In this document: positions 182-47,592 of the stretch, piece after piece
Layout of the letters: every line of letters starts with the position of its first letter
How positions within the stretch are numbered: position 1 is the first letter of the stretch
Assembly (NCBI GenBank): GCA_965637545.1
Contig: OZ281495.1
Span: 21,700,001 to 21,764,000 of the forward strand
DNA length: 64,000 bases
Direction: 5' to 3'
Source of the DNA: Phallusia mammillata
Taxonomy: Eukaryota
Made by a program: the position numbers and the translations under genes
The notes under the pieces: model-generated
Seen by the model: the letters and a program-made list of their open reading frames with translations, nothing else
The model's database searches: none
What the model was told of the DNA's origin: nothing

Positions 182-3074
182 CTTCACAGAGAGTTCCATT
201 TCCTGCAAAGCCGTCTTTGCATTTGCACGTGTAATTCCCGATTGAGTTTGTGCATGTTGCATTGACATGACATCCATCGATCTTTTCAGAACATTCGTTT
301 ACGTCTGCAAAGGACAAAACTTTTAGAATTGAACCCTGAAATGAAACAAACTTGGATTTGCCCATGCCTTTCGACCCATAAGTGCTCACCGGATAAACAG
401 ACTTATTTAAACTTTCTCGTGGTCTGGGGAAGCTTTTAAATATAAAACATATAAAGGTTAGCATAGAGTTCAATTTGGCATCGTTTTGTTTTGGTAAATG
501 TCATTGGGCGATAACTTCCATTGTGGTCATCACATTTTTGACACAGGTTTGTGACTATGACAGAAATTCTACTAACGAAAAATAGAAAATACCAATGGAT
601 AGTAATTTGCTAAATACCCACGGGTAGCGCAAAGAGCATTAAAGAATATTCGAAGCCAAACTGTGTGAAAATACTGACGGTTAGGGTTGTTAGGGTGAGG
701 TTTTGTAAAAAAACAAACAATAAACACAGCTTATAAACGTAGTTCCCAACAGATTTGATTACTTGTGCAACGAAGCAAACGTTTTGGCTCGATGAATATG
801 ATTAACCACTTATGTTTTTCGTTTATGTAAAACCGTTATGAAACCCTGACGAATGACAGTCCTTAAACACTTGCTAACATATCAAATTAGGGACCATAAT
901 GAAGTCACACGTTTTTTTTTAAATAAGGGCAACATTTCAAAAAGTATCAATCTTGTCAACCAGTGTTACAGCTAGCGGATGCTCATGCAACAACGCATCA
1001 CAAGTGAATTTCGCTGATGTAACACCATTTAAAAGAGTTTCGCAAAAATCAGTGATTAATGGAACTATTTTATGCGGGGTATGTTAATAACAGATCATCT
1101 ACCAAAATATCCAGTAAGTTGTCAAAACATCCAGCGATTGTAATAAATAGTCACTAACTCTTGTATCGATGCAATTGTTCCGATGGAAAAAACAAGTATA
1201 GTAAGTATATTAAATTTGATTTTCGTTGTAATGTTTTATGGCGTTATGATTACAACTTTTTTACCTGTACATTCCCCTCCGTTTGTGCGAAAACCCGTAT
1301 CGCATTGACAAGTGTAACTGCCCATACTGTTCGTGCATGTCGAATGAGACTGGCAAGCATTCAACGGTGATTCACATTCGTTCACATCTAAAAATGTCAG
1401 TGTTAAACTTGTGTATAAAATATGCCGAGTCACACTGTTAACAAGTCACTGGATGCTTCTGCAACCGAGATAAGGGGATGCGGTCGTTTTGAAGTGAAAA
1501 CAATTTGACCCTTATCTCAAACTGCAGCGCTTATTGGGTTTCGTTTGAAGCAGAAAAACACACAAGGTTCGGTCATACAGCCCCAGGCGCCTCTTGCTTT
1601 TTAAGATTGTCAAAAATGAAAAAAAAACTTTAGGGAAGTTCATTTAACTGCGCTTCGATAATTTGGCTGAGGTCGCGTGCTGCGAAAGTTTGAGAATCAC
1701 TTTGCAAAAATTATTCGTTAGCGTACAAACTTAAACCGTTCAAAAAAAGTTAAAGTAAAAAAAGTTGTGTATAACCAGAACATCCATTTTTAAGTCGTTG
1801 CTAAAACGCAAACACCGCCAACCTTCGCATCTTGATCCAATGACTTCGAAACCGCTTTGACACGCGCAGGCAAGACCATTCCATATCGCACCATCAACAC
1901 ATCCATGATACTCCGCTTCGCACAATTGACCATCTATTTTAATAAAACAAATAGTAGGCACTACATAAACACAATAGAGAACTGATGTTATGTTTGAATG
2001 AGGCACTAAAGATGCTAAATAGGCGCACCATGAAATTCTATACTCGGAACTGAGTATACTTTCGTTTAAACCAACGGTATACATCTAAGTTGTTTCAATT
2101 GCCTATATATTTGATATGCTTACACATAGTTGTAACTTGTAAGCAGACCAAAAATTCGAACCCGAACCCGGATCGTTTTTGAGAAGCCCGTTTTGGTCCG
2201 AAAGTTTGATTGACAGGCATCTATAAATCCCTACAAAAGGCACTTCTGCACAGCATACAATTAAAAACGGCGTTTTATAGGGATGTTGGGTATTAGATGA
2301 AGTACAGCAACTAGATGCTTTTGGGTAATTTTATTTTTAACGGACAAAGGACACAGAATTTAAAGTCGGGCCCGAATCAAGCCCGTTTGTTTGACAAAAC
2401 CTATAGGCCCAAACCCGGCCCGAACCCGACCCGAAAAGCCCGACCCGACTTACAACTCTGTGCTTACATACTTTTTCTCCTGTCTGTGGCTTATCATCTT
2501 CATTTCTAACAAAATTAAACTTACCAATGCAATTTTCTTGATCAACCTGGCATTCTGTGCTCTTGGCGTTAGAGGAACTAGGCGGACTTAGCGGATCTGT
2601 GTTCAAAGACACGTCACGTGAGCAAACGCGTGTAGAAATTATGATGTTAAACTACCTAGCAGCTTACCGAACCTTGCCCTCCATGTTAAAACCACATCAG
2701 TTTGCCACCAAGTTTTGACTTCTTCCAGTCGCGTTACGTCAGCACTGAATTCACACCTTGAGATCGAAGTGGGCAGGACTGCAAATGTGTCCCCAAATTT
2801 GGCACTTCCTGCCACCGTCGCGTCTATACCTGCTGGCTTCTTGCAAAACGAGTGTTGGAAATCCACTGTGACAGACTTTGTCGGATCAACCTTGTTTTCT
2901 CCGACCGTATACGTACCATTACAGAAAGCTGCAATACAAACGTAATTCGTGTAATGATTTTAAGTACCTTGCGAGCCTAATACATGGTATTTATGGATGT
3001 GTATAACAAAGCTCACCTTCAATCGTTTTCCAGTTTGACAACAGCACTAAAGCGATGAACCATAAAGTATCCAT
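182..3074 (-). CDS. Adhesion-GPCR paralog F, 5' part only (signal peptide, X module, EGF/EGF-Ca exons); continues beyond the left edge
   Basis: Signal exon 3017-3074 MDTLWFIALVLLSNWKTIE|gtgag. Phase 1-1 X exon 2668-2928. EGF-like exons near 2525-2590 and 1825-1930. EGF-Ca exons near 1265-1390 (DVNECESPLNAC...) and 182-304 (DVNECSEKIDGC...). GAIN/7TM is not in the window, so GPCR identity is inferred from paralogy. Confidence 0.75.
2125..2460. mobile_element. hAT-type non-autonomous element (MITE) with ACCCGA subterminal repeats
   Basis: 8-bp TSD TGCTTACA (2117-2124 and 2461-2468). Termini CATAGTTGTAA / TTACAACTCTG. A related left end appears to start at ~44614. Confidence 0.8.
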
Positions 3075-4684
3075 TAACTGAACCGATTTGACAAGAAAAC
3101 ACAGAGGTCAAGTTACAGTGCACAATCTATCACCCAATGGCATCAACACAGTTTATGCTATATTGGTGAACAAAAATGCTGGAGTGGTACTCTTTATAAT
3201 AGCCTCCACCAGCGCGTAAATTTCGTCACGTGGTGAACTGAAGAATAAATGTCAAACTGCTGTGTATAGTTTCATTGGACACGCGTAAACAATGTAATGT
3301 TTCTCGGAAGCTTGTGTAGCCTAATCTGTCAAGTCAAACTGACAATTAGTAGCTCAACTTGGAACTATCCGAACAACACACACAAATGCAAGGCAAAACA
3401 TTTTTGGTCAATAAGACGAACTTGATCCCTTCTTTACGTCTAATAAAACTTCAGCTAGACTTGACGAGTAATATTTTTTGAAAGACTTTATTGCAAACGA
3501 ACACCAGCTTGTGGAGAAGCGTACGACCACATACTGCGTAGTAGCAGTTTTCGACAGTTAAATGTGGATTCGTTTCAGGCTAAACTAAATGTGTTGATCG
3601 TGATCAAGCTTTTAAATTTGACCAATGACTAATACACCTCACCATACAACGGGCAAAACAACATTTAAGCCACTTCTATCAAATCGTATCAAGCCTGAGG
3701 ACTAATTTTTAATGTTTACGTGCGACACGACTGCGAAACTTTCATGACGTATACGTAGAGCTACCACCATGGATCGCTAGCTCTGTTTATGGTTAATCAG
3801 TTGTGTGACGTGACTTTTATTTGTCTGAGATAAGTACATTTCATTCACGGAAGCTTGCATAGCTTACGTACTGGGCCCGTTTGAATGCAAAGTTCAATTT
3901 TCACGTTCAATAATAAGGAAACTTTTTTGTGTCACACAGAATTATTTGAAAATATATCAAAGTGTTTGAATTAAAATCGTTTAGATTGGAAGTTTAAAAC
4001 AAAAAAGAAGACATTTTCGGTCGCACGGAACACACTTTGTCGAATTTTCATAATAAGCGTTTTATATGCAGCTTAATTCGTTGATATTTTGGATCATTTG
4101 ATGGATTTGTTTTTGAATTTCTTAGCAGGGCGTGTCGGATGCTTGCGACTAAATTTGCGCTCGTGCCAAATAAGAAGCAATTACGTCACACATATCACGC
4201 GAAGGACGGTGTGACGTTGCGAGACTTGTAGCCAAGTTGTGGCAAACCACGCAACCCATCTTCCCCTATATGTCCGTGCGCAAGTGTCAATCCACTATAA
4301 GCAATATTAATATGCTAAGTAGATGCGATTCTGATTGTGAGCTGAATGGACTTCTGATTGTTAAATTGATCTTCATGGTTACGTTTTGTAGGTAAGCTAG
4401 ATTACTTTAAGTTTTTTCGGCGTTCCTATTTTATTTGCCAAAGCACATCACATTCTAGTTCGTTTTATAGTACTTGTGTACATGTTGTTGTGAATTCAAT
4501 GCAAGTAATTCACATCGTCAAACATAGCAGAAATATGGCGTAATGCCTTAAAGTGACATTCGAAAACGCGGCACTGCACATAGTTGGAAAAGAACTTTCA
4601 AATACGAAGAAACAGTGAAGTCAAGTTTTTTGTACAAAAAATACATTAATTCAAATACCAAACTAAAAGTTTAACTTTTTCTAA

Positions 4685-10413
<5,729 letters not shown>

Positions 10414-11678
10414 AATGGTCCAATGCCGTAACTAGCAGCATAAGGACTTGCCCAAAACGAGTACGCTGATCCTGTTCGTTTCTCCACCTTGTGCGTTTAA
10501 CTGAACATTTAAACGCAGTTTTACGTTTCAGTCTGTTTCGTCATACGTTTTTTCGTACATCATTGCCGTTGTACATTTTGACGACTTCCGTCGCTTGATT
10601 GAAACCACCGGCATATAATGTCTGGATGTCAGCAAGTGTCAAGGGTTTAACCGGAGGTCACACTCTTCCAATTCATTTTATGTGAATAATGTGAAATCCA
10701 AGTTGTCTACTGCGGTCATTACTAAAATATGAAGAGTACAATGCGAGGCGACTAAGAGGTTGTTGCTCCCAAAAATTCTATTACAATGTGAACATATTTT
10801 TGTGGTCTGAAAACCTTTGTAGAAAATCAAAAAAACTATTGTAGTTCATTTTACCCAATGAAAATAAATGTACTTAAACTAGCACTAATGCAAAACGTAG
10901 ACTACGCTGATTTGTTCATTGTATTAAAAAATATTTTTATAATGCGATTATTCTTTCAGACAAACCAGAATACAAAGTGATCATAATGCAAAGCTTTTCT
11001 ATTTAGTCGGGCCAGTATTGGTTCAAAAAATCCAAAACTTTTTTATTGACTTAGGTCTTTTGCGTGCTTTGAAGCTTCTTTAAGTCCGTCGGGAGAGGAT
11101 GTTGATTGTTGTTTGGTAAAAACACGACAGATGTAATGAACTCCTGTGCTTATGACAGTATAAAGCATCCATGTTGTGTAAGTTCTTACACAAAGAAAAC
11201 AATTTGTCTGGCGAAACAAAGGACATCTATTTACAGAACCGTTTATTTTCAGAAAACATATAAGCAGTTAAAATGCAAAGAAAAAGAATCCGCAGCCGAG
11301 ACCAATAAACGCGACAATTTAGATGTAAAATTATTATTAAATTTTGGGAATGTACTCGGTGGTCCCAAACTTTTGTAAATTTCCGACACTAAAGTTCAAG
11401 AAAAGATGTACAAACTTGGTAATAGGGATCAAAACAAAAGCGTACTATACATTTAGAACGAAAAAGCACATTTCTATCCTAGTCTATCCTACATTTGATA
11501 CGACATCAGAGCAAGCTGGGGAAAACTTGTAGGACGCTCTGATTTTGTTATACAGTAAGTGCATTTACAAATCGTTATTGCACAGTAATGTTACAGTAAA
11601 AACAATCATTTTACAGCGTTTAAAATGCTTCAACAAAAGACAAAAATTATATTAGAGCAGATTGTGCCCTATATAACT

Positions 11679-14600
11679 TTACGACTGTGTGCTTTGAAAC
11701 GTTTCTTTGTAAGACTGAGAGTTGGTACCCAATCCACGGCTGCCAGATGTAGATGAAGTATTCTGGGATACAATCGAACGAATCGGAACCCACCAAATCT
11801 TACGCAATTCAGGGGAGCGAACAGATGTGAGAAAAAATATCACTACCCCCTACAACAACAAAAACCATGTACTTAATGGAGGCTTGTTTATTTGTGGCAA
11901 CTTTGCATCCTCAAATTACCTGCAAGGTGTTAAATATTGCGAAAAGCCAACTCATAATGCTGAAGTAGATCTCGTCGTTCGAGATAAGCATGAGATATCC
12001 GAACACCCAGGTCATCCCCATGATAGCTGACATGCTCGAAGCGATAATAAACATTTGTTTGTTTGTTCGCTTCATGGAGCTTGTTTGTGCCTGAGTGTAT
12101 TTTGCAATAAAAAAACGCAGTATTTTTAGTGTTTGTACAACTTACCTCAATATTTTTGCAGGAAATTTCACGCAATACAGTCACGAAAACTCCTAAGTTG
12201 AACAGGAAGAGAATTCCCACGGGAAGAAGAAATGCAAAGTTCAAAGAATGTCCGGTTAACCAGCACATATTTTCAGCGCGATACGTCGAATAGAAAATAT
12301 TGGCGTCATCTAAATCGGAAATACGTTTGATTCGACCTTATGATATTTATCATTTGTATGACGTCGTTAGACAGGGGTTTAACGTACGTTAAGCAATTCG
12401 CCCCTCTTGATGACCTCTATGACTGTTTAAATTGAAATGTCATCGTATTAAAGGTTTACGTTATCAATTAAACAAATCGGCCAACAATTTAATCAATTGA
12501 ACGCGAATTGAGAAGTTATGATTACTAAAGATAATAATCAGAATGCCAAAAATGTGATGCGTCGTAAGGTTTCAAAAGTCTTAAGGTTCTTCATGATTGC
12601 AGTAAATAATTTTAAACCTTGTTCTTACGTTGGAATTATCCGCTTCAAGCAACGCCAAAAATGATGCTAATCAATATTGTACAGTGTTATAATGACTGAG
12701 TTAGCCTGCGAAGTTGTTACGAACCTTCGTTACACAAATTGGTAGCAACTTTTGATCGATGATCGGCGTATCCCAATGTTAAAGCAAGAGTCAGACTGAC
12801 GACAACCAGTGGAGAGCCGTATGAAAATGCGGAAACGCGTTGAAGAAATCCCCCAGTATCTTCCCTGAACACCTGTAGGTATTTAAAATGTACCAAATGT
12901 ATCGCGGTTATTGATAGTCACTGTACCTACAGCGTGTTCTAAGGATCAAACACTATGTTCGCTATTAGCGTTAGCTATTCACTTTACAACAATATTTTGC
13001 GAAGCTATTCTTGTCTTGGCCGCTATTTTCTACTGTTGATCAATAACATTTAGGCCAATTAGTCAGTAATACCTTAACAACAGACATGTACATGTCGTAG
13101 CTGTACACGGCCATCCAGCACCAGGTGGTAAGCATGAAGTAGTGTAACAGTACAGCTACCAGCGTGCAAGCGTGGCCTGCGTTTGCTCGGGAAACTCCAG
13201 TGACAAAAATCAGGTATACGACCAGCAGGTTGCAGCAAATGTTTATGAGAATCTTTGCAGGGCGGCGGCGTCGGAGTTCACTGCAGAAATTGAATTGTTA
13301 CATTAAATGGTTGATATGTGTTTAGATATTTTGAGTTTTACCGATGAAGGCAATGCACGATGATTGTGAAAGCCAGACCAAGAATAGAAAGGATGCAACC
13401 AACGTCACTGACAATGTCAAGTGCTACGTCACTAGGAACAATCTTTGAATTCTGCATTACAATTATCAACGATTAAAAATATATATATATATATGTGAAA
13501 CAAAATAAAAGACAAATAATTGTGCTCAAACCATTTTCTAACGTACATGTGAATATAATCGATGTTGTCATTATTATTTAATTTTTAAGATTACAAAAAA
13601 ATGTCAAGAAAGGTTACGTTGCATTTGAGTGATACTTCTGTACTTACGACGAGTAAGGCAAAGTTTGTGAGATGATTGCAGCGACATTCCTTTGGGTCCG
13701 TAGAATGATCCAGACAACATCCATTTGTCGACCACGCGCTTCGATTAAAATCCCAATGCACACATTCCAATGTGGTTCTCGCTGCCTACATGGTATATAC
13801 GGTTTATCAATTCAACCTGTTTAAATAGTCTCTACAGAAAAGCATATATAATGGATTTGGCCAAATGCCACGGTTTACTACCATGAAAGAGTTATCGGTT
13901 GCAGTCTTTTCTCCATAATTAGCAGCCTCTCCTGGATGTTGTATCTTTACCGGATCTGTTAGATTATTCACCGGACTTCCGTCTCCAAGCTCAGCGGATA
14001 TAACCTAAACCACAACGGATGTTCACAGAAACGTTGTTGCTCACTCTGTTAAAAAATGAACGTACCGAAACATTTTCGGAGTCAAACAAAGTTGATCTGT
14101 CGTAATATATAAAAGCTGAGCGTACAGTGGTTGGTTGTGAAGAGTTAGTCGAACGCTTGCCCCGAGTTTGTGTAAATTTTGCAATTGCGGTTGCTGGAAT
14201 GTTGATCACAGGTGGATTGAATGTATTTAAATTGCTTGAAAGCGCAGGTTCAAAAACAACTGGGTCCTTGCTGTTGACATATATATCTTGTACCTGCGTA
14301 AAAATATGGATAAACCACAGTATTACGCGAGCAAAAGCCCCCCTGATTTTTTTGATTTTTTGCATTTTTTCGTTAGTTGAAAAAACAACACTGTTTATAA
14401 TGTTGCACCTTGACAGAAATAGATTCAGTAGCAAAAGTAAATGTTTCGTTTGGGGTGTCAAGATTAACTTGTAACAGTAGCGCTGATATTGCTCGCACAA
14501 CTTCAGTTCGTTGTGATCGGAGTAACACGGACGAACTTCGAAATATATTGCTGGCTGTCAATATTGTTGAATTGGCAAGACTAGATGTAACCTGATGACA

Positions 14601-17600
14601 GAAAAGATTTTGTTGGCATTGGTTATCCGTCAAAAGGAAAGAAAGTAAAAATAGGATGGGACTCACATTTATATTTCCTGCTGATGCTGCTTTCGATATA
14701 TTGCCAATAAATTGAGCTGCAATGTTAATCACACCAGGAGTTAGAGCTTGTGGATCGGATGTAATTTCACCAAGTAGAAGTGAGACTGTCTCCGTTGCAG
14801 TTGTGCTTGTTGTGGCATTTGCGATTGACTGAATTAACAACATCCTATTAGATTTTGTAATCACACCTGTCTTACATTTATCTCATACAGTGATGTGTAT
14901 GATGAATATTTAAAAGCGATTTGGAAACTTGGCTCTAGCTTGTTGTGGAAACAGCAGTAATGTGAGTGTAATGAATATTATATAACACACCTGTTGAATG
15001 GCGTCTTCGCAGGCTGTTTTGTTTGTGGTGCATACAGATTGAAGCACACCCTTACCTAATACAACACAATTGTTTACAAACTTGCCTGCAAACGTTTTTT
15101 TATTACATTAACAAAAGTTTGCTCTTACTCACATATTTTCCCCTCTAAATGGTAACCTGCATTGCAAATACAATTGTAGCTGCCGTTCGTATTCACACAC
15201 AGGGCATTGCTGCCACATTGCGAGGAACTATCACACTCGTCTATATCTGCAAGTAGTTTTTGTTAAATTTAATCTTTAAAACTAATTGTGGCATTTTTAA
15301 ATTAGCCTCATAATACAACATCATAATACACTAAGTTTTACCTGTTTTACAATGAAGTTGCATTGCACCTGATTCTATTATACACATGTGGGTAAACGGG
15401 CGGTTGATTCAATAAACCAACTTTGATTTATTGCAAAGACATTTCAATAATAAAGAAAGTTAAGGACTGTGCTCGTTTGTTGAACCTTCATGTTTTTTGT
15501 ACAACGATGCGAACTCTCTGGATTATTTACTTTTATGTTTTCCAATGCATCGTAAGATTTTTTAGTCTTTTTGACGTGTATTACTGTGTAAAATGCACCA
15601 ACCTTTGCAAAAATTTCCGTTTAATTGATAACCGGAGTTACAGTGGCAGGTGTAATTGCCTTCGGTATTAACACAGTGGCTGTTGTTCCAACATTGTTGT
15701 GCATTATCGCATTCATTAATATCTGTCGAAAACGCGTTAGTGGTTACCTTAGTAAAACATCACAACGTTTAGCCTTACTCAGAATGTATCAATTGATAAC
15801 AAACCTATACATTGCGTTCTGTTTCCAGTAAATCTGTTTAGATACACGCAGTTGTGGGAGCCCAAGGTGTTGACGCAGGAACAATTAGAAGAACAGCTGC
15901 TGGCATTTGTTTTGCACTCATCAATATCTGCGTGCATGTACATGTACATTACATACATCAAAATATTGCTCAAGTGGCGGTTTAATGCGATTGACAAATT
16001 TGTTTTTTGAATTTTTATTGCTGTTGGTTTAGTTTCGCGTCCACTCAACGCTCCTCGAAGTGTACGACAGTAACTAAACCATTAAAGCAATAGTAAATGA
16101 TCCGTCTGCGCGTTCTAAGTGTCGGCTACTATTTATAAATCTCTTTTGACCCGTTTGAGACATTTTTTTTCCTTTTGTTGATAAGGTGACCTTTTATTAA
16201 TTATGCTATTAGGCTAAATTGTTTTAGTTTTGATTAAAATTACCAGAATCTTACGTAGAGCCGCGCAATACTTCTTTATTGACTTCAACGCAGTTATAGA
16301 CCGTTTACAATTACCAGCTTACCAATTACCAGTTATTTCAGGCAACTTAATGACCGTATTCTCCACATGTGTGAAGTATAAACCGGGACGAAATATTTCA
16401 AATCTGACTAGCAACTAAACGTCCTCGATTATATATCACGAATAAAAAACGTCTACCTTGGCAATATTTGACGGTCTTATTCCAAACAAATCCTTTTGGA
16501 CACAAACAGTCGTAACTTCCATAGTGGTTTGTGCAATTAACTTCGGTTGCGTTCTTGTAAATGTCTTTGTGGGGTCCGTGACTTTCCACAACGCACGGCG
16601 ACTCAATACATTCATTCACATCTGAAGACGTATGTTATAACTTATAACTTATATTGTGCAAGTGGTAGCTTTCCCAGTGCGCCATTTTTTTGCTATGTAC
16701 AGGATATAAATATTTTGTATAATTTTTACATATATTTTGCAAACCTTTGCATGTAACTTTATTGTTTTCATCTTTTGTTGTGTTGTATCCTTCCGGACAT
16801 GAGCAGTTAAAGCTTCCAATTGTATTGTTGCACTGTGGCGTTTCAGTGGTGTTGTGGAAAAAACGGCAATATCCAGATATTTTACATTCGTCTTTATCTG
16901 CAAAAACATTACTGTATTAGTTCTCAAATGCTCGAATAATCACTACTTTTGTAAATCGAAATTGCGACACCCGCAAACATTTATCAATTTTATTGGGGAT
17001 CGCAAGTGTGCATTAAAGTAAAAACAGTTTTAAAAAAATACATTTTCAAATAGTTTTTTTTTTACTAGAATAAGCGCAAGATTGTTTCCGTAAAACCAAC
17101 AGTGGGTAGTCCACTTAAATTGAAACTGCGCTGCGTATATTCAGTACTCTTTGACCTTTGAACTATCCATAATAATTAGAAATGTATTTACGTACCTGTA
17201 CAATTAATGCTATTGGCTGTAAACCCTTCTGTGCAGTTGCATATGTAGTCATTACATTCGGCCCCTGTTAAGCACGTCGAGTCTGCAAAACATGTACAAA
17301 ATTGTACCTATATTCGTTTAAGTTATGTATCCAAGATTTATTACCTGAGTTGTTTAAGAATTCATTCCATTGGATCGTATAATTGTCCCTCCACCAGCAT
17401 TTTTTGTCCGTCGACAGATTAAAACTTACGAAATTGCTCTCGTTGTGCAATAAATGAAATTCAATGTTATCGCTTCCAAAATTAATTTGGCCACATGATA
17501 TCGGTTTGCTGCAAAACCTTCGAGACATCGTAATGTTTAGAAACGTCCATTTCGAATTGCGGCTACTACCAATCATCGTTTTTCCATATGTTCCTTTAAA

Positions 17601-18812
17601 ATAATACAGTGTAAAATTTGTGTAACGTTCTTGTATTCAATACAATGTGAGGTTTAATAAAGTAACTAGTTTGTTGTCGAGATGCAGAGAGTTAATTACT
17701 GCAATCTTGTAATATTATGCGCATTGCTTACTTTATTCACGGCACAAAAAGAACTTTGTGCGTTAATCTACATCAGACAAATAACAACGTACCTGGAATC
17801 TGACAAATGAATAACGCTATTGTACTTCCGTCAGTCCATTCCGTTCTGTTGCTGGTTCTGTTAAAAGTGCGACATTGCGTCGCATTACTACCCATGACGT
17901 AAAATTTTCCCGATTTTTCTGAAGCAAAACAGTGTGTTTAGTGGGTACGACCAAACACGAACCGATGGACAAGATAGCATGGAAATATTAAAGGACAACA
18001 TGTATCATTTGAAAGTGCAGGTTATGTTAAAAAATACAATATTTTGTTCAGTAAACGGTTTGCTTATCATATTTTGTGTTTTTAGTTAAAATATCAGACA
18101 GAATGGCAGATTTGTCTATTTTTGTTGCCCATTGTTTATACGTGACACGACCAGAGAAGGTACGTGTCAATTTCATGCAACGACGTCTACTATCACAATA
18201 GCCACAACAATTCTAAGCATTACCAGCTTCGATTGTGTTGGTTTGGCTATCACATGTGAAATTGGAAATACTTCGTTGTGTCAGTGTCCGAGCAAATTGC
18301 AGGTAGTCTTCCGTTAAGTTAAATAGTGTTCCGTTATATTTCTTACACTGTAGTTCGGCGGATGAACAATTGACACCATGATCCCCCACAAAATACACAA
18401 CATCGTCAACTTGATAGACGGATCCTGAAATGTAAGTAGATGAAACACACATCTGGTTGAATTTGACATTGCTTTACAGCAGGTTGTCAAACTGGCCAAA
18501 TTAGTTGATATAGCAACCAACTTTAATGGAATGATCGGTGCACATTTTAAAGCTTTAGTGTTTCATTAAGCCAATCTTCTTGACATGTTCTCCGCCCTAG
18601 TCATTCTTTATCAAGCTCTAGTTGCTACATGATTCACCTCACGGTTATCCATCCGGTGTATAGTCACATCGGCACAATAACAAAGTTAAACAAAATGGGT
18701 AACAAAATGTAAAACAAAACTATACACCTCTTTGTGCCACCACAACATAGCAACCGAAAGTACAAAAAGTTATCCACGCTAAGTATCGGTTTATGCTGCG
18801 TTTTGTTTTCAT
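11679..18812 (-). CDS. Adhesion GPCR paralog D (SP-CTL-like-X-6 EGF-GAIN-7TM), complete
   Basis: Signal exon 18728-18812 MKTKRSINRYLAWITFCTFGCYVVVAQR. CTL exons ~18235-18424 and ~17793-17920, X exon 17345-17593, EGF exons ~15130-17285. GPS exon 13648-13785 ([13 protein letters not shown]), TM2-3 exon 13073-13280, TM6-7 exon ~11927-12100. Stop after ...FQSTQS at 11679. Confidence 0.94.
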
Positions 18813-28600: not shown

Positions 28601-31600
28601 TACAAATAATTAGCAATAAAAAAGCTTAAATTAGTTTATCAGCCTTGGAATACATAGGCAAAGCATTTAACCTGAAAAATTATACGGCCCGGTAACGAAC
28701 TCCTCGCGGACCGGCGGTTGCCGACCACTGCGTTAAAGCATTGTGTCATATCTGCTTTCGAAACAAAGATACAAACAGCTAAGCATATTTCCATAATAGT
28801 AATCTTTTCTTAACTCTATGGTGATAAGTTTTGTTTTGTTTTGTCAACGTTTATAAGTAATATGTGCATTCATCTGTTGGATCATTCTCCAATGAGTTCA
28901 TCATATTACATTTTTTGGAATCTATTTACCTGTGCATTGTTGTCCGTTTCCACTAAAACCAATTTTGCAGGTGCAGAAAAAAGAACCATCAGTATTGTTA
29001 CCACTAGCGTATTTAGGGGGGGGGGGGGGGACAAGGTGCCATGCCCCCCCCCTCAAGAAATTTTGACCGGCTGTTTTAGTATTAAATCTTGTCCAACTGC
29101 GCGTATGACGTTACAATGGGTTTTTATAATAGCTTTGTTACGTCACACTCATACAAGTGAAGATAATTCACAATATGATTAAGACGCAACCACTGTTAGA
29201 AACAACTGTGCCGAGTGTTAAAAAGTGTTACATGAACACGATCGAATCGTGACTATAACGTTCGTTACTTACAGCAAGAGTAAGGGCTTCTCAGGGCCTT
29301 AGGCTAACCAGCATTTAGTTGATATTGCGAGTTTAGTGGGCACAACAGGTGCTAACAGAGAGGTCTACACAGTCTACCGCAAGGTGGCGCACTTGTCACC
29401 GCAAGGTGGCGTACTTGTCACCGCAAGGTGGCGCAATATATTTTATATTGTTGCCCCCCCCCCCCTAAAAACGATCCGAGATACGCCACTGATTGTTACA
29501 AGTTGCATTGGGATGACATAAATTTACGTTCACTGTACATTCATTTATATCTGGAAAAATGTTTGTGTTGGCGCATGAAATACCGGTTTAGGATATTGAT
29601 TTTGAAACAACAGATAATTGTAGGATAAAATTTTAAAATTATAGTCTATCCCACAAAACAAGAATATCTTACCCGTACAATGTTGACCATCTCCGCTGTA
29701 GCCGTTTTTGCACTTGCACTTATATGAACCAGCGAAATTATTGCATAATGCGAGATTGTGACAATTATCAATCCCCATCTTGCATTCATCAATATCTGTA
29801 ACATTTAGTACATATGGTTGCAGTTGAAAAATATATATTAAACGGATCGTATTTCATTCCTTTTAAATTCAAGCCAACTGTGCAGTTAGTTAAGATGAAC
29901 ATAAATTCATAGCTGTAATAAACCCTGAAGCGTCTATATACAGACCTTTGCAGTAAGGTTTACATTTCAGAGAGCCCTGAATATTGTTCAAACGTAGTCT
30001 GTACTGTCTTTTTTACGTAGACATGCAAGTTCAGACTTAATCACAGGTTTGACTGAGATTTCAGAAAATCTTTTTGTCAAAAGTTATACGTACCAGTGCT
30101 TTTTTTTCTTTCCACTGATATTTGTAATATTAAACTAACATATTACGAACTACAAACATTAAGAACCTTCGCAAACATTAAGAACAAACATTAAGTTCCC
30201 ATTCTTTTTGTATCCAGAATGACAATCGCATTTGTAACTGCCCCTGGTGTTCTGACAGTCACTATTGTTCCCACAGTTGGTTGAGTTTAGAGTGCATTCA
30301 TCAATATCTACGAAAAATAAACAAATAGGTAACTATGAAACATAAATGACCCATTAAGGTTATGTAGCATAACTATATCGGTCAAAGAAAATGAGTCACT
30401 AGGGTGACACATTTTCGACGAAGTCGCCATGAATGGATTATTTTTTAAAACAACTGCAATATGACGAGTATTGCCAAAATACATCAAAGTAGAGTCAGAC
30501 ATTTAATAAACGATAAAATCTTTTTCGGTATGAATGCTGGTAGTTTGTCAGTTTAATAGAAATCTTTTAAAATTGCTTTGCCTTCTATTTAATCTGCCCA
30601 CCTGTGCATTCTGTTCCGTTGCCTTGAAACCCATCTTTGCAAGTACATCTGTGTGCGCCAAAAGTGTTATCACATTTTGCGTTGGAGTGACATGGACTAC
30701 TCGAGCATTCGTTAACATCTGTAAAGCAGATTAATGGTATTTACAAGCAAAAAAGTCGTTTTTTGAGAAGTTGTAAGGGCGTCCATTTTGGGCTTACTTT
30801 TTGTCTATTAAATATTTCTCGCAAAGCATGTTATTGCTTCTAACTTTGAACACTGCATACTACGCTACAACATGCAGTATAATGTAGCCTTCATCCTTAA
30901 TAAGCATGACCAGAAAAATAATGATGCTTAAAATATTATTTTCAGGATTTGTTGGGTAAATTGTTCTAAATTGAACAAGTATTTGTAAGGTAAACAGTTG
31001 TTTTATTAGTGTCTACTCAACTTATGTTCTACACCCCCCAAACCACCCAAGTTGTTTTGTTTTGATGCAAGTTGTTTTGCAACAATAACGTTTAAATAAA
31101 GGAAACCGATTCTTTGCCGATTTCTTAAAATCTGACAGCAAATCATAAACGTATTATTATAACCCATTTCCAATGGTGTATTACCAACGCCAGTAGTTTT
31201 AGCGCCAGTACTTTTGACAATACTTTTAGCGGGCCCGAACTTTACCTAAACGTCTCGAAAGATTTACCAAAACGAAATTACAACAAATATTTTGTCTGGT
31301 GTGAAGTCAGGTCTGAAAATCCCGGCACGACTATCAGCTCGCTATTGACATTGCGTGAAGCATTTTAATGTGACGAAGAGAATGCGTAACCTACTTTTCC
31401 AAGTTGATAAAAAGGCGAAACAGCGCTTACCCTCACAAGTATAAATGACGTAATGGTCCTGATCATTACGTTTACTCCTTTCGAATCCACTTGAACAGTT
31501 GCACTGAAAACTGCCATTGGAGTTGATACACGTTGGCTTTATCGTTGCGTTGTTCTTGTAAAGGCAATAACCATCAACTTTACATTCGTCAATGTCTAAA

Positions 31601-34600
31601 AATACACAGTTGTTTGCTTTATTAACTTCGCGAAACTTGTGGGCGCTAAGTTGACATGCCCTTTCTGCCTAATGCCCTATCCCAGTGGTTCTTAACCTTT
31701 TTGTAGTCACGGACCCCTTTTATGAATTTTGTAAGTCTGCGGACCCCCAACGCAATTTACCGTAAGTCTTTTTGTGTTTCACATTTCTTGCATTATCCCT
31801 GTCATGCTTTAGAAGCATTTAAATCCGCCCTCGCAGTCCTTTAAAATCAATGACGTTTCTGTATTTTAGTGGCCAACGCATCAAATTGATAATATTTCTG
31901 GTATATATAACTTCACAAATCACTTGTCCTATAAAGTCTATTGTCCATGTGTGTTATGATGTCACAATAGCGAAAACAATTACAAAAGTATATGTTCTTG
32001 GCCCAATTAAGGTGCGATGAACAGCGTGCACTCGTATGCAGGATTGTAAAAACGGTTAAGAAACTTAAAAATATTCTTCTGTTGGTTAATGATACTTAAC
32101 ATATTTCCCTCCGTGGACCCCTGAAACCATCTCACGGACCCCTTGGGGGTCCGCGAACCCCAGGTTAAGAACCACTGCCCTATCCGGTACGCGTTTACCT
32201 TTCCCTTATTCTTGACACGACATGTTTACCTTTTTTAATTACTTTTTACATTTTACCTTATCCAAATCAAGTTTTATTAAGTTTTATATATATATATACA
32301 TACATATGTACAAATTTTGATTCTAGTGAGCTGGGAAGACCTGTAATCCTATATTACATATTTCTATACCTAGGTAGGTAAAAGCGAGAATTTTAATGGC
32401 AGCTATACGAAAATGTTAGAAATGTTTTTTTAACTAGGTGAACTGTTATGAATACTACTTTGGACAAAAAATTTACTCGACACCTGAAAGTGTAATTTGT
32501 GTTTCGCAAGCTATTTTATTTAGATTCGCACAAACAAAGAAAAAAATATTTTTCTTACCCGTGCAGTTGTCAGCATCTCCGATGTATCCGTCTTTACAGA
32601 CACACGTATATGAGCCATGGATGTTAACGCAATTTGCTAGGCTGTGGCAAGAATAGTTTCCAATTTCACATTCGTCGATATCTGTAATATTCAGTATTGT
32701 GTGGTTTTGATACGGTTGTAAAGCTTGCTTTCGGAACAAAACTAAAATAGTTTTCTATCAGCAATGCTCTTGACAGTTTTGGTTTAGTTTCATTTCTTTA
32801 ACTTTAGCCCCTTAAAGACAAAATAAATTTTGCTTTCTTCAGTGAATACAGCCGCTTTTTCATCTTTTGACCGTGTGCTAAAAAACGGACACAACGAAAG
32901 TTTTCTACATTAAAAAAATAGACTAGATATAAAAGAAACCTAAACATTGTTATGTTGCAATAAAAGGATGTGTGAAATATAAAGGATACTGATATCGAAC
33001 TAAAACCTTTGCATTTAACTTTTCCGTTTTCTTCTGTTGTTTCATATCCACCTGGACAAGTGCAGTTGAAGCTGCCAATTAAATTATTGCACGATGGTCT
33101 GTTACCAGTTTCGGGTAAAAAGATGCAAAATTGCTTCAAATGACTGCACTCGTTGCGATCTTCAACAAGCAAAACGCATTTTTTACACGTTAAAGACTTT
33201 TTCATGTTATCGTTTATACCCAGGCATTCATGTTTGTTGTAATTCCAAAAAAATCCGGAAGGACATTTGCAAACATAACGTCCAATCCTATTTCTACACT
33301 TTACATCTGTTTGGTTGTAGTATTGCCCATATTGTGCATTCTCCGATACGTTACACGGCAACCCCAAACACTCATCGATGTCTACATAAGAAATTTTTTA
33401 AGTTATGCGAGCTGCGATTGAATTTTTTCTTATGCATTTTGTAACTGCAAATTTCCTTCTCAACACTTAAAGCTGCTACAATGAGCCGTTACGTCAAAAA
33501 TCAATGAAAAATTGCGAAACAAATTCCCTAATAACATTAGCATTATATGTCTGTTAATGGCAAGCTTGAGTGATATAGGCGCAGAAAAGTACTTACCCTT
33601 GCATTTGTATTTCCCCCCACTTTCATTAACTAAATTATATCCGCCAAGACAGTCACATTTAAAGCCACCTGCAGTGTTTAAACATTCACTCGAAGCTTGT
33701 GCTTGATGTGAATAATCGCAATATCCACTCTTGCATTCATCAATATCTGTTGCAAGAGATGTAATTTGCTGCTTGAGACAATTTGTTAGCTTTCTGCAAA
33801 CACGTACCTTCACAATATCCCATAGTACCATTCCAGAAATAGCCATTTGGACACTGACAATTGTAGTTTCGAATGGCATTCAAGCCGTTAGGTGGCGTTA
33901 TGTTTTGGTACATATCACTATCATCTGTCCAATTACATGATAAAGCAAGACAATCATCGATATCTAAACGTTTTTGGTTTGAAATTAAGTTTGACCAACA
34001 ACTAGCTATTAACTAATAATAATAATCTAATATTTAAGTTTTTCGAACTTAAGGGCGCCTAAAAGGCTGGCATTCTGGGAGTAAAACGCTAAAGGCTAAA
34101 ATTTAAAACCTTATTAAACTCAAAATTGTCGAGACTTTTAACCCAATCGGCGAAAAAAATTATTTCGTTAAAATGGCCAATTGCTTTCTGCTTGGTAATT
34201 TGCAATTTTAAACGCCATATTTAAGAAATTGAATTGGCTCATCACTTACCTTCACAGTGAGTGCTATTGGCTAAGTTCTCCGATTCACAATGGCATTGGA
34301 ACTCAAGGCAAGTGTTGTTGGGTGTACATTCCAAATCATATTCTTAACAAACAGTAAGGCGTTATCTAAATCTATTGAATATCAACCTACGCATAAAGTA
34401 ACGTTTATGCAACCTACCTGTACTCACGATGTGTTGCCACGGAAGGGTAACCTCATACGTCCATGAGGATCTGATTCCTTGTGCAATCAAATTAAACTCA
34501 ACAAAATGTATGTCGTATCCAAACATTTCCAGCGTTACGTTGTATTGATATGTCCCATTACTGCCAGCAGTTGCATTTCTTGGCTCATTGCAAAAATGCT

Positions 34601-35440
34601 TGGACACTGCAATGTCAATCACATTCCCATTGGAACAGTTGATAGGTCTGATTAACGACTGTCCGGTTGTGACTGAGTCTGAAACAAACACTGATTGTTG
34701 TGTTGGAAAACAGTACGAATTCTATATTCAGTGTTAAGGTGGGTATATCTAATCACTTACAACGTAGCTTTATCTACTATTATTCTATTCCTCTTTGTGT
34801 TTTGTAAGACGAAACATATTCTGATTTGGGGGCACAAGCTGCACAAAAGAGGTACACAGTTTGTGTGGTTGCGACCTGTTGTGGTAAACTGACCTTTCAA
34901 TTGACAAATAAATCGTGCTTTGTTGTCACAATTTATCCATCTTGTGTGGTTTTGCAACCTATTGTAGATCATGCAGTGGTTTGAGTTTGAATCGTTTATG
35001 TAAAAATCATTCATCATCTCTATACAAACAAACCGATATGATTTACCGTAAACCATATCACCACAACATTAAATATACCTTCGAAGATTGTTGTGTTCAT
35101 ATTGCTGCATCTACAAACCTGGTTGGTTTTGTTTGTAATGTTCCATGCAGTCGCCAAATCATTCATTGTGGAAATGGGAAATAATTCACCGTTGTCGTTT
35201 TCACATGCCTGGATGGCTTCCGTATAATTAACTACACTGTTTCCGACAAAGTAAATGCTATTTTGGATTTGATGAATAGATCCTAAACAAAGTCGGTTTA
35301 AACGGTTACTGACGCAATATTCTCAAGAATTTATTACGTGTAAACTCCATGCAAAAGCAAATATATTGTACGTTACCTTGTTGCCCAGTGACCATAGCTG
35401 TGCACAAAATAAGAAACCAAACAAGATTAGGGATCCCCAT
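19650..35440 (-). CDS. Adhesion GPCR paralog C (SP-CTL-like-X-about 21 EGF exons-GAIN-7TM); one EGF exon is interrupted by a transposon
   Basis: Signal exon 35377-35440 [24 protein letters not shown] exons ~35080-35285 and ~34893-35018, X exon 34418-34678. EGF-Ca exons (D-[IV]-[DN]-E-C...) from ~34340 to ~23048. Hinge exon 22535-22599, GPS exon 21199-21336, TM2-3 exon 20716-20923. Ends ...DETHF* at 19650. Confidence 0.92.
25765..25988. mobile_element. hAT-type MITE (CAGGGGTCGGCAACC TIR)
   Basis: TIRs present, with perfect 8-bp TSD CGTTAAAG. Confidence 0.88.
28525..28730. mobile_element. Duplicated copy of the 25765 MITE with an 18-bp internal deletion
   Basis: Same TSD CGTTAAAG and same flanks, so it was copied by the segmental duplication rather than by transposition. 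Confidence 0.88.
29002..29491. mobile_element. 490-bp hAT-like non-autonomous element inserted inside an EGF-Ca coding exon of gene C
   Basis: 8-bp TSD ATTGTTAC (28994-29001 and 29492-29499). Imperfect TIRs with poly-G/poly-C subtermini. Absent from the paralogous exons at ~23430-23550 and ~26190-26310. Confidence 0.9.
29375..29436. repeat. About 3 x 22-bp minisatellite (CTTGTCACCGCAAGGTGGCG) inside the exon-disrupting element
   Basis: Direct tandem copies without spacers. Confidence 0.8.
31683..32177. mobile_element. hAT/Charlie-like MITE (CAGTGGTTCTTAACC TIR)
   Basis: Perfect 15-bp TIRs and 8-bp TSD CCCTATCC. Absent at the homologous positions in the two younger repeat copies. Confidence 0.9.
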
Positions 35441-36607: not shown

Positions 36608-39600
36608 TTAAGATTGAGTAAACTCAGTAGTAATAGTTGTTTCCTCATAACTTTGTGACACTTGGTAAGACTTGCTGTACATTCTTATCTTGTCGCTGAC
36701 TCTGGAAGATCCGCGCGATATGACCGAGCGAATCGGAGTCCACCAAACCTTGCGTAGTTCAGGAGATCGAACAGATGTGAGAAAAAAGATCACCAACCCC
36801 TACAATAAAGTAGTTACAAACATAGACGATTAAATATAGCTAATGGAAGTGATGGATTTGACACCGTGGTCCTATTGAAAACTTTTGGGTTACCTGCAAG
36901 GTATTGAACAATGCAAAAAGCCAACTCATGATGCTGAAGTAGATCTCGTCGTTCGAGATGAGCATGAGATATCCGAAGACCCAGGTCATCCCCATGATAG
37001 CTGACATGCTCGAAGCGATCATAAGCATTTGTTTGTTTGTTCGCTTCATGGAGCTTGTTTGTGCCTATAACGACATTTAATGTGGGGGTTTCCGACTGCA
37101 TAAAGAAAGATAGCAAACTAAAGTTATTAATGAAACACTCTGAGTCGACATCACTTTGGTTCCCAAACAGTTGTTAGGCCATTTTAACCAGTTGTTCCTG
37201 TGGTTTATGCCAAGTGGGGGCAACGAATCACTTAACTGCTGACTCAGCAAATTGCTGACTTAGATTTGTTTTCAAGCGTTCGAACCCAGGACACTCCCGG
37301 GGACGAATCCCGAACAGGTTTTTTTTATCTCTGTATGTAGGCTCAGGCGCGCCAGACCATTCAGCCAAGTTATCGTTGCCATTGCAAACGCATATGCCCT
37401 GCTGCGCCACCTACCGGAAATTAGCATGCCTATGCCGTGAAATATTGTCTTAGTATCTTTAACTGTACTAATTATCCAAAAAACAAGCTCAAAGATAATA
37501 CATGGTAAAACAGTACAATCACAGTACGCCAGGCCCATTAAAGGTGTCATACCGAATCAGCCGGTCACCAAGCATTCACCACCATATGGCAAGGCGTAGG
37601 CTAGAAAAAACTAGCCTGCGGTGGGATTCGAACCCACGACAGGAGTCTTTCCGGGACTCGCGCTCTACCAACTCAGCTACGCAGGCTCAGTGGAGAATCC
37701 GCCGAAAGTCGAATCACAAGCACCGTTGCCTGCCTCGTATGCTGCACATTTCAGCTTCGTAGTAGGGGATCGCCAGATTGACCAGAATCAGTTAAGATGA
37801 ACATAAATTCATAACTGGGATCAGCCCTGAAGCGTCGATGCAGACCAGCGATCACCAGCGATCGTGTGCCGTGATCGCTGGTCTGCATCGACGCTTCAGG
37901 GCTGATCCCAGTTATGAATTTATGTTCATCTTAAAACAGTACAAGACAAAATTGGACGAAACCTCCGTTTTCTACAGTACCTCTATGCTTTTGCATGAGA
38001 TTTCGCGAAACACTGATGCGAAAACTCCCAAGTTGAACAGGAAGAGAATTCCCACGGGAAGAAGGAAGGCAATGTTCAAGGAATACCCAGTCAACCAGCA
38101 CATATTTTCAGCTCGATAAGTTGAGTAGAAAACGTCGCCTGAAAGAATATGTCATGTAAAAAACGGCACATTATGATCATTAACTTAATTACAAACATAT
38201 GTTAATAGTAATGTTGAAACAGTGCTTTCGTCTAGAATTAAGCCAATTTTATTACATTTGGCTTATATCGACAAAAAATGAATGTTTCGTAACGAACAAC
38301 TGTTAGCAAATTTAGGTCAAAATTGCTCATAGTTGTTATAATGCACTTGGTTAAGTGATACTCCTATGTGGTTAAAAAGGGCCTTAGGGCCACAACATGC
38401 TACAAAGACAAACCTTTGTCACACAAGTTAGTATCAACTTCATGCTGCTGATCAAAGTGTCCAAAGGTAACGGCAAGAGTAATAACGACGACCAACAAAG
38501 GCGTTAAATACGAGAAAGCAGAAACACGCTGCAGAAATCTACCAGCATCTTGTCGAAAAACCTGCATATATAGTCCAACATGAGTTGACTGCAGTGAAAG
38601 CAAGTATACAAAAATGATAAAAAGTAAAAGTAAAAAACATAAAGCCAATCGTTGGTAGTTATCGAAAACTGATGGTACGTTTGTTCCCCTTTTTTTATTC
38701 CTGTTACCTTGACAACAGACATGTACATGTCGTAGCTGTACACGGCCATCCAACACCAGGTGGTTAGCATGAAGTAATGTAGCAGTACAGCTACCAGCGT
38801 ACAAGCGTGGCCTGCGTCTACACTTGATACTCCTAGGACAAAAATCAAGTAGACGACCAACAGGTTGCCACAAATATTAAGAAGAATTTTCGCTGGACGT
38901 CGGCGTCGCATGTCACTAAAAGGTACACGAGATTGATACACTGACTTGTAACACTGCAAAAGTTTTAATGTTTACCGATGAAGACAATGTACGATGATTG
39001 TAAAGGTAAGTCCGAGAATGGAAAGAATGCAGCCGATGTCACTCACAATACTGAGAGCTACGTCACTGGAAACCGTTTTTGAATTCTGTCAATAGTTGTT
39101 TATTAAACTTTTTCCTCATAAATATTAAAGAGAATGCAATGTTGCATACAACATCGTTCAAAATACGTATAATAGTCTGCTTTAAGCTTACAACGAGCAA
39201 GGCAAAGTTGGTGAGGTGATTGCAACGACATTCGACAGGATCCGAAGTTTGATCCAAGCAGCAACCACTAGTAGACCACTCGCTTCGATTGAAGTCCCAA
39301 TGCACACACTCCAACGTTGTTTTCAGCGACTGAAACGTGACAAGTTCGGTATTACACCACATGCTTTGCACAGTTAGGATAATGCCGAAGAATCTCACTT
39401 TTCTGGTTTCATTGGAAAGAGGGGTCGTTCCGTATCTGTTGTTTTCACCTTTGTGTTGAATCCGTACAGGATCTGTGAGGTTATTCACGGGAGATCCATT
39501 TCCAAGCGCGGCCGAAATCACCTTAAAATTACCGTTTACCATGTACGCTGATGCTGACCTACAGTGTTCAACTCAAGCAAAGTTGTACGTACCGATGATA

Positions 39601-45600: not shown

Positions 45601-47592
45601 CTGAAGATTAAATTAGAATGCGTTTTGCCTTACCTGTACACTGACCGCGGCTACTTTCAAATCCTTCGTCACAATCACATCGAAAGTCCTTGCAAGTGGC
45701 ATTTGCCTGGCATAAAGCATTTGAATCTGTGTAAACGTTAAAAAGGAATGTTTAGCAGGAATTTATATGCAACAATTATAACCTTCTGAACCCTTTACAA
45801 TTACACTTTATACATTTTAAAAGATTTAGAATCGCTACTTTTAGCAGTTAAAGCTACATATACTATACCTCCTTTTGTGACATTATTCCAATAGAGTACA
45901 AAATACCGTTCGCTCCAATAATTTCCAAGCCTTGTGACATTGTATGTTACCGAACAGTCGTTGTTCCGTACTGTTGTTAAACTAACTGTGTAGCCGTGAG
46001 TCTGGTGATCGATTGTGGTGTTAAGCCAGAGGAATTGACAACATTGGGATATTTGAATGTTCACCAACTTCCATTCTGAACATCGGCTTCGGCCAATCGG
46101 TGTTTCTCCGATTGTTCCTAAAATTGATAAAAATGTTCAACTACAATAATAATAGAAAGCGATTTCGTGGTCTCTGGCAAGCTATTTTTTTTTTGCGAGT
46201 TGGTCTGCAATTTGCCATTGCGGTGACGTTCGTTTCGTGAAATGCTTGCAATACCTTACATTCATTTTGCGCAGTATTTTCATTTATAATAACACTTTAC
46301 AATTTGTTTAGATAAATTATTGTAGCTTTAAAACTATAAGAGAATTGATTCGATGTTTTTTTTTACCATAAGACCAGAAGGGCCTACTTTCGTAACCAAA
46401 ATGGTTATAACTATAGTGGCATCGGCAACGGCGTATAAGTTTCAAAGGAAAGAATCTTTTTTAAGTCGATACTTTCACATTTGTGAAATTTATAACGAAA
46501 TACATACACATTTTTTAGGGATAAAAGCTCCCTCTTGTATCGGTATGTTCTGACGCCCATGATAACCGGGGTTAAAACGTACCTTTGAATTTACAAATAA
46601 AGAAAGCCAACGTGTTGCAATTTATCTGGCTTGTGCTGTTGTCTTTTCTGTCAAAGGCCATACAGCTTCCATCACTTTGAGCCGCTACGTAAAACTTTCC
46701 TTCTCTCTCTGTTTTCAATACCCGATACTTTGTTGTGAATCTTTCATATTAAATTTTAAATATTTGAAAATATTTATAACTTACCCGCGTCTTCGGTCTT
46801 TGACTTATCAAAGCATGCATAGCTGGAAACATGTGTGTTCGTTATCTTCCAGGCAAAAGTTGTGTTTTCGGGAGACAAGTTGTAAATTTTTCCTTGGTTG
46901 TAATTCGAACACTCTGTTTTTGCATTCTCGTAGCTTAAGGCAAGACTCCCAACAAAGTAAACGTCGTCATCAAACTGGTGAATAGATCCTTGAATAAAAT
47001 ATTAACACACAAGCTTAAGTTTATCAAAATCAATTTAAAAGGTTAAAAAACGCGACCTCCTTAGCGTAGGCCTGCGTCTTTTCGGGGATTCAATTGTTCT
47101 TAAACTTTATGACATTTTTACACTTCTCTGGTTGCACGTTGGCGTTCCCTAAATTTATATGACACAGACTGCTATTTTCTTTACGGCTTCCCCCATGACT
47201 TCAGTACAAACTACACTAAGTGATCCAGGCGATATTTTTAATGTGGTCTACCGGGGACATTTGTATGTAAAAAGACCACCTTATATTACATAACTTTGGA
47301 ACCAATGAAGTCTAACTTCTGTCCGGATTATAAGATAAACATAGCAGTGCTGAGTCGAGATAAGTAATCTTATGCGTGCATAAGCAATGATTTATTATAT
47401 AGTTAGAACTCAAGTCTCGTTTAAAAAATAATTTAAAATAATATTTTTTTATCTTGTATAACTCAGTTCCCGTTTGAAACTATACGTTTGACGTACACAA
47501 GAATCAGATTAAATTTTTTATGCTTTGCACCTACCTCGTTGCGCAGTTACCATGCTGCAGCAAATTGCGACAATTACTGCAATGGTCTGCAT
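36608..47592 (-). CDS. Adhesion GPCR paralog B (SP-CTL-like-X-11 EGF-GAIN-7TM), complete
   Basis: Signal exon 47535-47592 [22 protein letters not shown] exons 46785-46988 and ~46583-46710, X exon 45869-46117, 11 EGF exons ~41055-45730. GPS exon 39192-39329, TM2-3 exon 38708-38915, TM6-7 exon ~36895-37065. Ends ...TEFTQS* at 36608. Confidence 0.94.
37613..37686 (-). tRNA. Atypical tRNA-like Pol III gene in a gene B intron (predicted anticodon GGA, short variable arm, C33)
   Basis: GCCTGCG TA GCTG AGTTGGTA GAGC GC GAGTC CCGGAAA GACTC CTGTC GTGGG TTCGAAT CCCAC CGCAGGC T. Perfect acceptor, anticodon and T stems, A-box, B-box GGTTCGAATCC, and T6 terminator 3 nt downstream. Confidence 0.6.
37792..37934. 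repeat. Perfect 64-bp inverted repeat with 15-nt spacer (foldback/MITE-like), TTAA at both ends
   Basis: Arm 37792-37855 is the exact reverse complement of 37871-37934. Degenerate single arms occur near 23880, 26640 and 29890. Confidence 0.9.

Follow-up and report, generated by a model that had tools for sequence, protein, structure and literature searches.

What is the module that precedes the EGF-like repeats of a receptor gene array in the ascidian Phallusia mammillata? The array lies on the minus strand of a 64-kb stretch of contig OZ281495.1 (positions 21,700,001 to 21,764,000; hereafter the window), and its tandem receptor genes are designated A–F. In genes B–F, a single exon encodes a module of ~85 residues, which we term X. 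A sequence-only reading of the window had proposed that X was a beta-rich extracellular domain, possibly the ligand-binding unit, that could not be assigned to a known family. In this report, we establish the exons of X along with its homology and fold. As judged by profile comparisons and structural models, X is a very divergent H-type lectin domain (PF09458) that the Pfam model misses. We consider it likely that X is a real single-exon, extracellular, H-type-lectin-like domain that would act as the distal recognition unit of these receptors.

Exons Encoding X

The five X exons were found on the minus strand at positions 2668–2928 of the window in gene F (261 nucleotides (nt), the least diverged copy), 9291–9557 in gene E (267 nt, the most doubtful copy by sequence), 17345–17593 in gene D (249 nt), 34418–34678 in gene C (261 nt), and 45869–46117 in gene B (249 nt). 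The lengths are all multiples of three, corresponding to 82–88 codons, and each interval is open in one of the six reading frames. An AG acceptor and a GT donor flank every one of the five exons, and all are in phase 1-1: one base is taken from the preceding exon and one base is given to the next, so that either skipping or inclusion of X preserves the reading frame. The coordinates and phase proposed from the letters of the window were thus borne out for all five genes, and the two motifs described at that time, hydrophobic/S/[FC]-C near the start and W..[ILF]-x-W near the end, are present.

Each copy of X contains one to five predicted N-glycosylation sequons and two to four cysteines. The cysteine located just after the second strand (the column of residue C26 in copy E) is nearly invariant among the copies from the window, from contig C5 of the same genome, and from other species, and a second cysteine is absent from many copies. 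The near-invariant cysteine may pair with a neighboring domain or with another chain.

The Five Copies as One Family

The pairwise identity among the five window paralogs is 11–25%, in agreement with the low overall identity noted previously, and BLAST links none of the X copies to one another. The significance of the relationship was therefore judged by profiles. Each copy was left out in turn, and a profile constructed without it was ranked against the 1250 open reading frames (ORFs) of the window. Using the four remaining window copies, the left-out copy was the best untrained ORF for F (1.6e-4), D (1.2e-6), C (3.6e-3), and B (7.8e-7), and the left-out copy from gene E was not ranked first among the untrained ORFs. 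After relatives from other organisms were added to the profiles, all of the left-out copies were found (7e-23 for F, 7e-5 for E, 9e-7 for D, 3.4e-4 for C, and 5e-7 for B). A profile constructed only from the sequences of other organisms returned the five window exons as its top five matches, and the modules from contig C5 alone scored the X exon of gene F at 8e-13. The similarity thus exceeds chance, and the five window X exons are, by these profile criteria, one family.

Relationship of X to the H-Type Lectins

A ten-copy profile of X was compared with 1.84 billion proteins, and 43 matches were obtained at an E-value of ≤1e-3. PF09458 is found on 16 of these 43 proteins and Gp53-like_C on 7. 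For all five of the proteins that were checked (P0002, P0003, P0008, P0014, and P0026), the match to X coincides with the stretch identified by Pfam as H_lectin. When the five window copies were aligned to these five Pfam-verified H_lectin stretches with hhalign, a probability of 92.9% (P 3.8e-7) was obtained over 80 columns; copies B–E alone gave 85.8%, and the reversed and shuffled controls gave less than 0.3%. The first of the two X motifs aligns with the family pattern V.F...F..P and the second with W.Q.L.L.W.A.

The structural models point to the same family. In the ESM Atlas, the top clusters for the features of copy F carry H_lectin or Gp53-like_C. The AlphaFold2 (AF2) model of copy F, calculated with a 10-sequence alignment, has six strands and a predicted local distance difference test (pLDDT) score of 78, and the top Foldseek match to this model is the Helix pomatia agglutinin (HPA), with an E-value of 2e-3. 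The first 12 entries returned by VIA-align for the F model are all H-lectin-fold chains, with 79–81 of the 86 residues aligned, and the scores include 8.9 for the R1 pyocin fiber, 8.2 for HPA, 7.9 for LKA1 gp49, 7.7 for discoidin I, and 7.3 for SLL-2. The model of copy E, the weakest copy, also has a pLDDT of 78, and when this model was compared exhaustively with 48,161 chains, the scores were 8.1 for LKA1 gp49, 7.5 for R1 pyocin, 7.4 for HPA, 6.5 for discoidin I, and 6.2 for SLL-2. X is thus predicted to be a six-stranded antiparallel beta-sandwich that is superposable on HPA, discoidin, and SLL-2.

The statement that X belongs to no known family must therefore be revised, since the profile search, hhalign, and the fold search all place it among the H-type lectins, with Pfam alone missing the relationship. 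The family that was found with confidence is none of those listed previously as candidates; neither a Pfam match nor a fold match was obtained between X and SEA, Ig/FN3, CUB, or ZP-N. The description of X as a beta-rich extracellular module holds, based on the six strands of the models, the sequons, and the position between the signal peptide and the EGF-like exons. A ligand-binding role for X is plausible because the modeled fold is that of a lectin.

Several results weigh against this assignment and against the role that it suggests. No relevant Pfam match was found for the five window copies and five copies from contig C5 at E-values of ≤10, and the cut-off of 24 bits for PF09458 was not reached. 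PF09458 likewise matched nothing in the six reading frames of the genome at E-values of ≤1; the control genomes were equally silent, so that no weight attaches to this result. A word-indexed protein search with the alignment also returned nothing, an outcome that its length window would predict. No solved H-type lectin was reached in sequence searches of the PDB with the X profile, two canonical relatives, or a two-domain H_lectin profile, and no usable match was obtained for copy C in the ESM Atlas. Copies B–E are without most of the motifs that are common to F, the modules on contig C5, and the canonical members (DTF, GF, R-x-D, and GWGQ), which casts doubt on a conserved sugar pocket in these four copies. 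The H-type lectins are trimers that bind sugar in a pocket located between protomers (PMC6048534; bioRxiv 10.64898/2026.06.18.733164). Finally, the X exons are covered by zero RNA contigs, and the only RNA-like contigs are those from the 3′ half of gene E.

The negative Pfam and PDB sequence searches would also be explained if X were an unrelated small beta-sandwich (Ig-like, FN3-like, CBM-like, or new) that resembles the H-type lectins only because six-stranded sandwiches are common. However, the E-values of 5e-15 to 1e-5, calculated for the whole library, relate X to proteins that are matched on the Pfam H_lectin stretch itself, independently of any fold. The hhalign probability of 93% extends over the full length of the module with clean controls, and Pfam gives no match to SEA, Ig, fn3, CUB, or ZP. 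An unrelated sandwich is thus very unlikely, and we retain the assignment of X to a divergent branch of the H-type lectins.

Receptor Architecture

The order of exons in the window genes is signal peptide, a C-type-lectin-like module (B–E only), X, a stalk of EGF and EGF_CA repeats, a putative GAIN/GPS region, and the seven-helix core. Pfam recognizes both GPS, placed just ahead of the first transmembrane helix, and 7tm_2, each in a single exon, as is expected for an adhesion G protein-coupled receptor (GPCR) of class B2. In gene E, the GPS exon (6836–7045, ORF limits, minus strand) scores 53.3 bits against a cut-off of 22.5, and the seven-transmembrane (7TM) exon that encodes transmembrane helices 2 and 3 (6070–6348, ORF limits, minus strand) scores 36 bits against a cut-off of 20.6. 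The GPS matches in the paralogs, also on the minus strand, are at 13642–13785 in D, 21196–21333 in C, 39183–39335 in B, and 52529–52684 in A, and the region from the EGF-like repeats to GPS contains approximately 2 kb of exons. From these domain matches, the window genes are tandem EGF-TM7 adhesion GPCRs. GPS matches at G000:C2:21.686–21.753 Mb show that the array extends beyond the start of the window.

The predicted signal-peptide exons are on the minus strand and in phase 1. They are located at 3017–3074 in gene F (58 nt, with an ATG, a hydrophobic core, and a GTGAGC donor), 10347–10413 in E, 18728–18812 in D (85 nt), 35377–35440 in C, and 47535–47592 in B. These exons are homologous between genes, and the ending ..AQRG is common to B, D, and E. 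In gene F, the signal exon is followed by an intron of 88 nt and then by X, with nothing between them. The placement of X directly after the signal peptide of F was therefore correct; the argument for a ligand-binding unit that was drawn from this position is weakened by the module that lies ahead of X in genes B–E.

A short EGF-like exon with a six-cysteine pattern follows X in each gene, and calcium-binding EGF repeats come next. This first exon is found on the minus strand at 17191–17307 (ORF limits) in gene D, 45611–45751 in B, 34245–34343 in C, within 8608–9033 in E, and within 1743–2084 in F. The first EGF-like exons of B, C, and D match Pfam EGF or EB below the cut-off; the EGF exon of gene E is above the cut-off (EGF_3, 39 bits), and the next exon of gene D (15128–15262) matches EGF_CA with 41.7 bits. 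X had been described as lying before an EGF array, and this is generally so, with the exception of gene E, in which the array consists of one EGF exon.

The sixth receptor gene of the window, gene A (51371–52684), has GPS and 7TM exons that are only 49–56% identical to those of E, and no X exon was detectable upstream of gene A as far as the end of the window. A block of ~2.9 kb is present in tandem triplicate in the EGF array of gene C (23384–26268, 26140–29010, and 29492–31308). Two of these copies are 98.6% identical to one another and the third is 88% identical, which reflects either a very recent internal expansion or an effect of the assembly.

A Second Module Upstream of X

Genes B–E contain a module of two exons between the signal exon and X that is absent from gene F. 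Its exons (ORF limits, minus strand) are found at 46777–47001 and 46575–46748 in B, 35023–35322 and 34760–35068 in C, 18216–18473 and 17776–17937 in D, and within 9796–10278 in E. By eye, the module resembles a C-type lectin, with ..YFVG.. followed by ..FICx at the end. The Pfam scores are all below threshold, with E-values of 0.019 for Lectin_C, 0.02 for UL45, and 0.12 for Xlink, and we treat the identification of this sequence as a C-type lectin domain as a lead.

Divergence of X and Evidence for Transcription

Among genes E, D, C, and B, the 7TM exon is 78–89% identical, compared with 11–25% for X. The GPS exon is 69–78% identical among the same four genes, and that of gene A is 49% identical. 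The introns of the paralogs do not align, and recent copying is thus not the source of the conserved 3′ halves. In the tree of X sequences, the terminal branches of E, B, D, and C have lengths of 1.5–2.9 relative to a median of 0.3; the branch of F is 0.51, and F lies near the copies from other species. D and C pair with a support of 100/92. The tree is compatible with a single entry of X into the array and does not discriminate one entry from several. The low identity and the branch lengths indicate that X in genes B–E evolves very fast.

RNA-like contigs from one public run (X4) cover 4811–6980 of the window and contain joints at 4941/5244, 6313/6591, and 6697/6878, with CT..AC ends. The RNA label of this run is a guess that is supported by the spliced forms themselves. 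The joint at 6697/6878 touches the GPS exon of gene E, and the joint at 6313/6591 touches its 7TM exon. These contigs show transcription of gene E from the minus strand and splicing of its RNA, with support for the 3′ half that encodes the GPS and 7TM parts. Transcript-derived support for this type of module is found in two other Phallusia proteins, P0004 and P0015, which contain an X-type module.

The lack of RNA over X, terminal branches that are 5–10 times the median, and the variation in cysteine number from two to four could be taken as signs that the X intervals are decaying or never-spliced relics, with the long branches of B–E resulting from lost constraint. Such relics would not be expected to keep an open frame, both splice sites, and phase 1-1 in five of five genes. 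Both Trp motifs are retained, as are the positions of the hydrophobic core, a confident AF2 model is obtained even for copy E, and the neighboring exons of the same genes are intact. We regard decay of X as extremely unlikely, and the X exons are treated here as functional parts of their genes.

Copies of X Across the Genome

X had been reported as a module of five paralogs, and this proved to be far too narrow. When the five window copies were searched against all six frames of the genome, further copies first came to light on contig C5, and at least 149 copies, a lower bound, are now found genome-wide on contigs C5, C3, C8, and C6, mostly alternating with EGF exons. The suggestion that X is a shuffleable module is supported by the reuse of a symmetric phase 1-1 exon at least 149 times beside EGF exons. 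Within positions 18200001–18310000 of contig C5 (loci L011–L021), at least 47 X modules are present on the two strands, separated by EGF exons that stand singly or in pairs, and by their predicted domain order these genes are (H-lectin-like, EGF, EGF) repeats. P0004, a Phallusia protein labeled "Notch precursor", is an X-EGF protein of this design and is probably misnamed. An F-like copy of X (37% identical) followed by an EGF_CA exon was also found on eukaryotic contigs in metagenomes.

The protein P0015 ("CD97 antigen-like" at NCBI, from Phallusia mammillata) is an adhesion GPCR in which X occurs in several tandem copies and EGF repeats are absent. It maps to G000:C3:24967825–24980132, with 91–100% identity over several exons and 64–100% over the whole gene. 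Pfam calls neither GPS nor 7tm_2 on P0015 at E-values of ≤0.01. The GPS-like stretch of this protein (residues ~720–760) reads ..CICKQVTDYSLVV.. and is without the usual H-L|T/S cleavage triad, and therefore P0015 may not self-cleave. At least 150 GPS motifs score above the Pfam cut-off in the genome, with dense clusters on contig C1 at 1.2–8.8 Mb and on contig C2 at 32.9–33.1 Mb. By this count, GPS-bearing genes are very largely expanded.

Comparison with Known Systems

The H-type lectins (PF09458) include the Helix pomatia and Helix aspersa agglutinins, the C-terminal domain of discoidins I and II, and the coral protein SLL-2. They share with X a six-stranded beta-sandwich of ~85 residues, in which the pattern (I/V)G .. 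K.V.V.F...F..P lies close to the start and W.Q..L.L.W.A forms the end. The identity between X and the solved H-type lectins is 8–16% in fold alignments, and X scores below the Pfam cut-off. X differs in its near-invariant cysteine and in the loss of DTF, R-x-D, and GWGQ from copies B–E. Moreover, X is one exon of a multidomain membrane receptor, whereas the H-type lectins are small secreted or cytosolic trimers. The fold of X is also that of the phage tail-fiber, tailspike, and R-pyocin knobs (PF21882, Gp53-like_C; 6cxb, 4ru4, 4y9v, and 4mtm), which match X with equal or higher Z scores (7.5–8.9). The knobs are C-terminal trimeric receptor-binding tips, whereas X is internal, eukaryotic, bounded by introns, and followed by EGF repeats.

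Like the window genes, the vertebrate ADGRE receptors (CD97/EMR) have a signal peptide, calcium-binding EGF repeats, a GPS with an H-L|T-type site, and a secretin-like 7TM core. As far as is known, the ADGRE receptors begin with the EGF array, whereas in the window genes the array is capped by a lectin-fold module, together with a C-type-lectin-like module in B–E; the likeness is one of architecture. The Phallusia receptors of the P0015 type use the same module family in a GPCR context, with tandem strings of modules and no EGF stalk, whereas the window genes have one X per gene ahead of the EGF repeats and their copies are far more diverged. An adhesion GPCR with an N-terminal lectin domain is known in the latrophilins (ADGRL), where the domain is of the rhamnose-binding (SUEL) type (PMC6900090). 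The fold of that lectin is unrelated to X and there is no EGF stalk, and thus the latrophilins provide an analogy and not a homologue. In a survey of Ciona GPCRs from 2008, most of the unclassified adhesion receptors had only a GPS domain (PMC2396169). The literature that was searched contained no paper tying H-type lectins to animal adhesion GPCRs or to ascidians, and the architecture of an H-lectin-like domain with an EGF array, GPS, and 7TM was not found there.

Proposed Function of X

Given the modeled fold, a lectin-like unit for recognition is probably present in these receptors. X would sit at the distal end and bind to another surface, recognizing either a glycan or a protein there, and force exerted on the engaged ectodomain would be relayed by way of GAIN/GPS, the route taken in other adhesion GPCRs. 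On this view, the extreme divergence of the paralogs in X, next to a 7TM core that stays conserved, would be due to diversification of ligand specificity or to its loss.

The sugar-pocket residues of discoidin A include W235 and Y241. X has a near-invariant Trp some nine positions ahead of the terminal Trp, and as a guess it may be the equivalent of the pocket Trp of the lectins. The H-type scaffold could instead have been repurposed for protein binding, for oligomerization (trimerization of the receptor tip), or as a spacer, with the fold kept and the lectin activity lost. There is a precedent in the pilin CofB, whose H-type lectin domain binds a peptide of CofJ and not N-acetylgalactosamine (GalNAc) (PMC6048534). 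The fiber knobs of phages and pyocins are among the best structural matches to X, most of the polar and aromatic motifs of the family are lost in B–E, and in the genes on contig C5 the module is a repeated block between EGF repeats that is structural in look. On the other side, F and the C5 modules keep the motifs of Pfam-verified H_lectin proteins, and the animal members that have been characterized (HPA and SLL-2), as well as the discoidins, bind sugars of the galactose (Gal)/GalNAc type (PMC8878817; bioRxiv 10.64898/2026.06.18.733164). A non-lectin role of this kind is possible but on balance unlikely. We rate glycan binding, relative to a protein-binding or scaffold role, as only slightly likelier for F and as less likely for B–E.

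A more ambitious proposal, which we offer as speculation and consider distinctly improbable in its full form, is that the window genes and their relatives encode an ascidian-specific system of fast-diversifying, lectin-capped adhesion GPCRs. A trimeric H-type tip, with the C-type-lectin-like module as its partner in B–E, would read foreign or self surface glycans (of microbes, the tunic, or gamete and colony non-self) and signal to a G protein through GAIN/GPS, with the sequence of X setting the specificity.

Conclusions

The fold and the family of X are known, and the branch to which X belongs is new to Pfam. The Pfam H_lectin model misses a large animal branch, with at least 149 copies in this genome and products named "Notch precursor" or "CD97 antigen-like", and inventories of tunicate lectins are therefore underestimates. 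To our knowledge, the ligands of adhesion GPCRs are mostly unknown. An unannotated module has now been turned into a testable idea, namely that a lectin fold serves for recognition in adhesion GPCRs of a chordate lineage. The pairing of a hyper-divergent X with a conserved 7TM core is a pattern known from recognition receptors.

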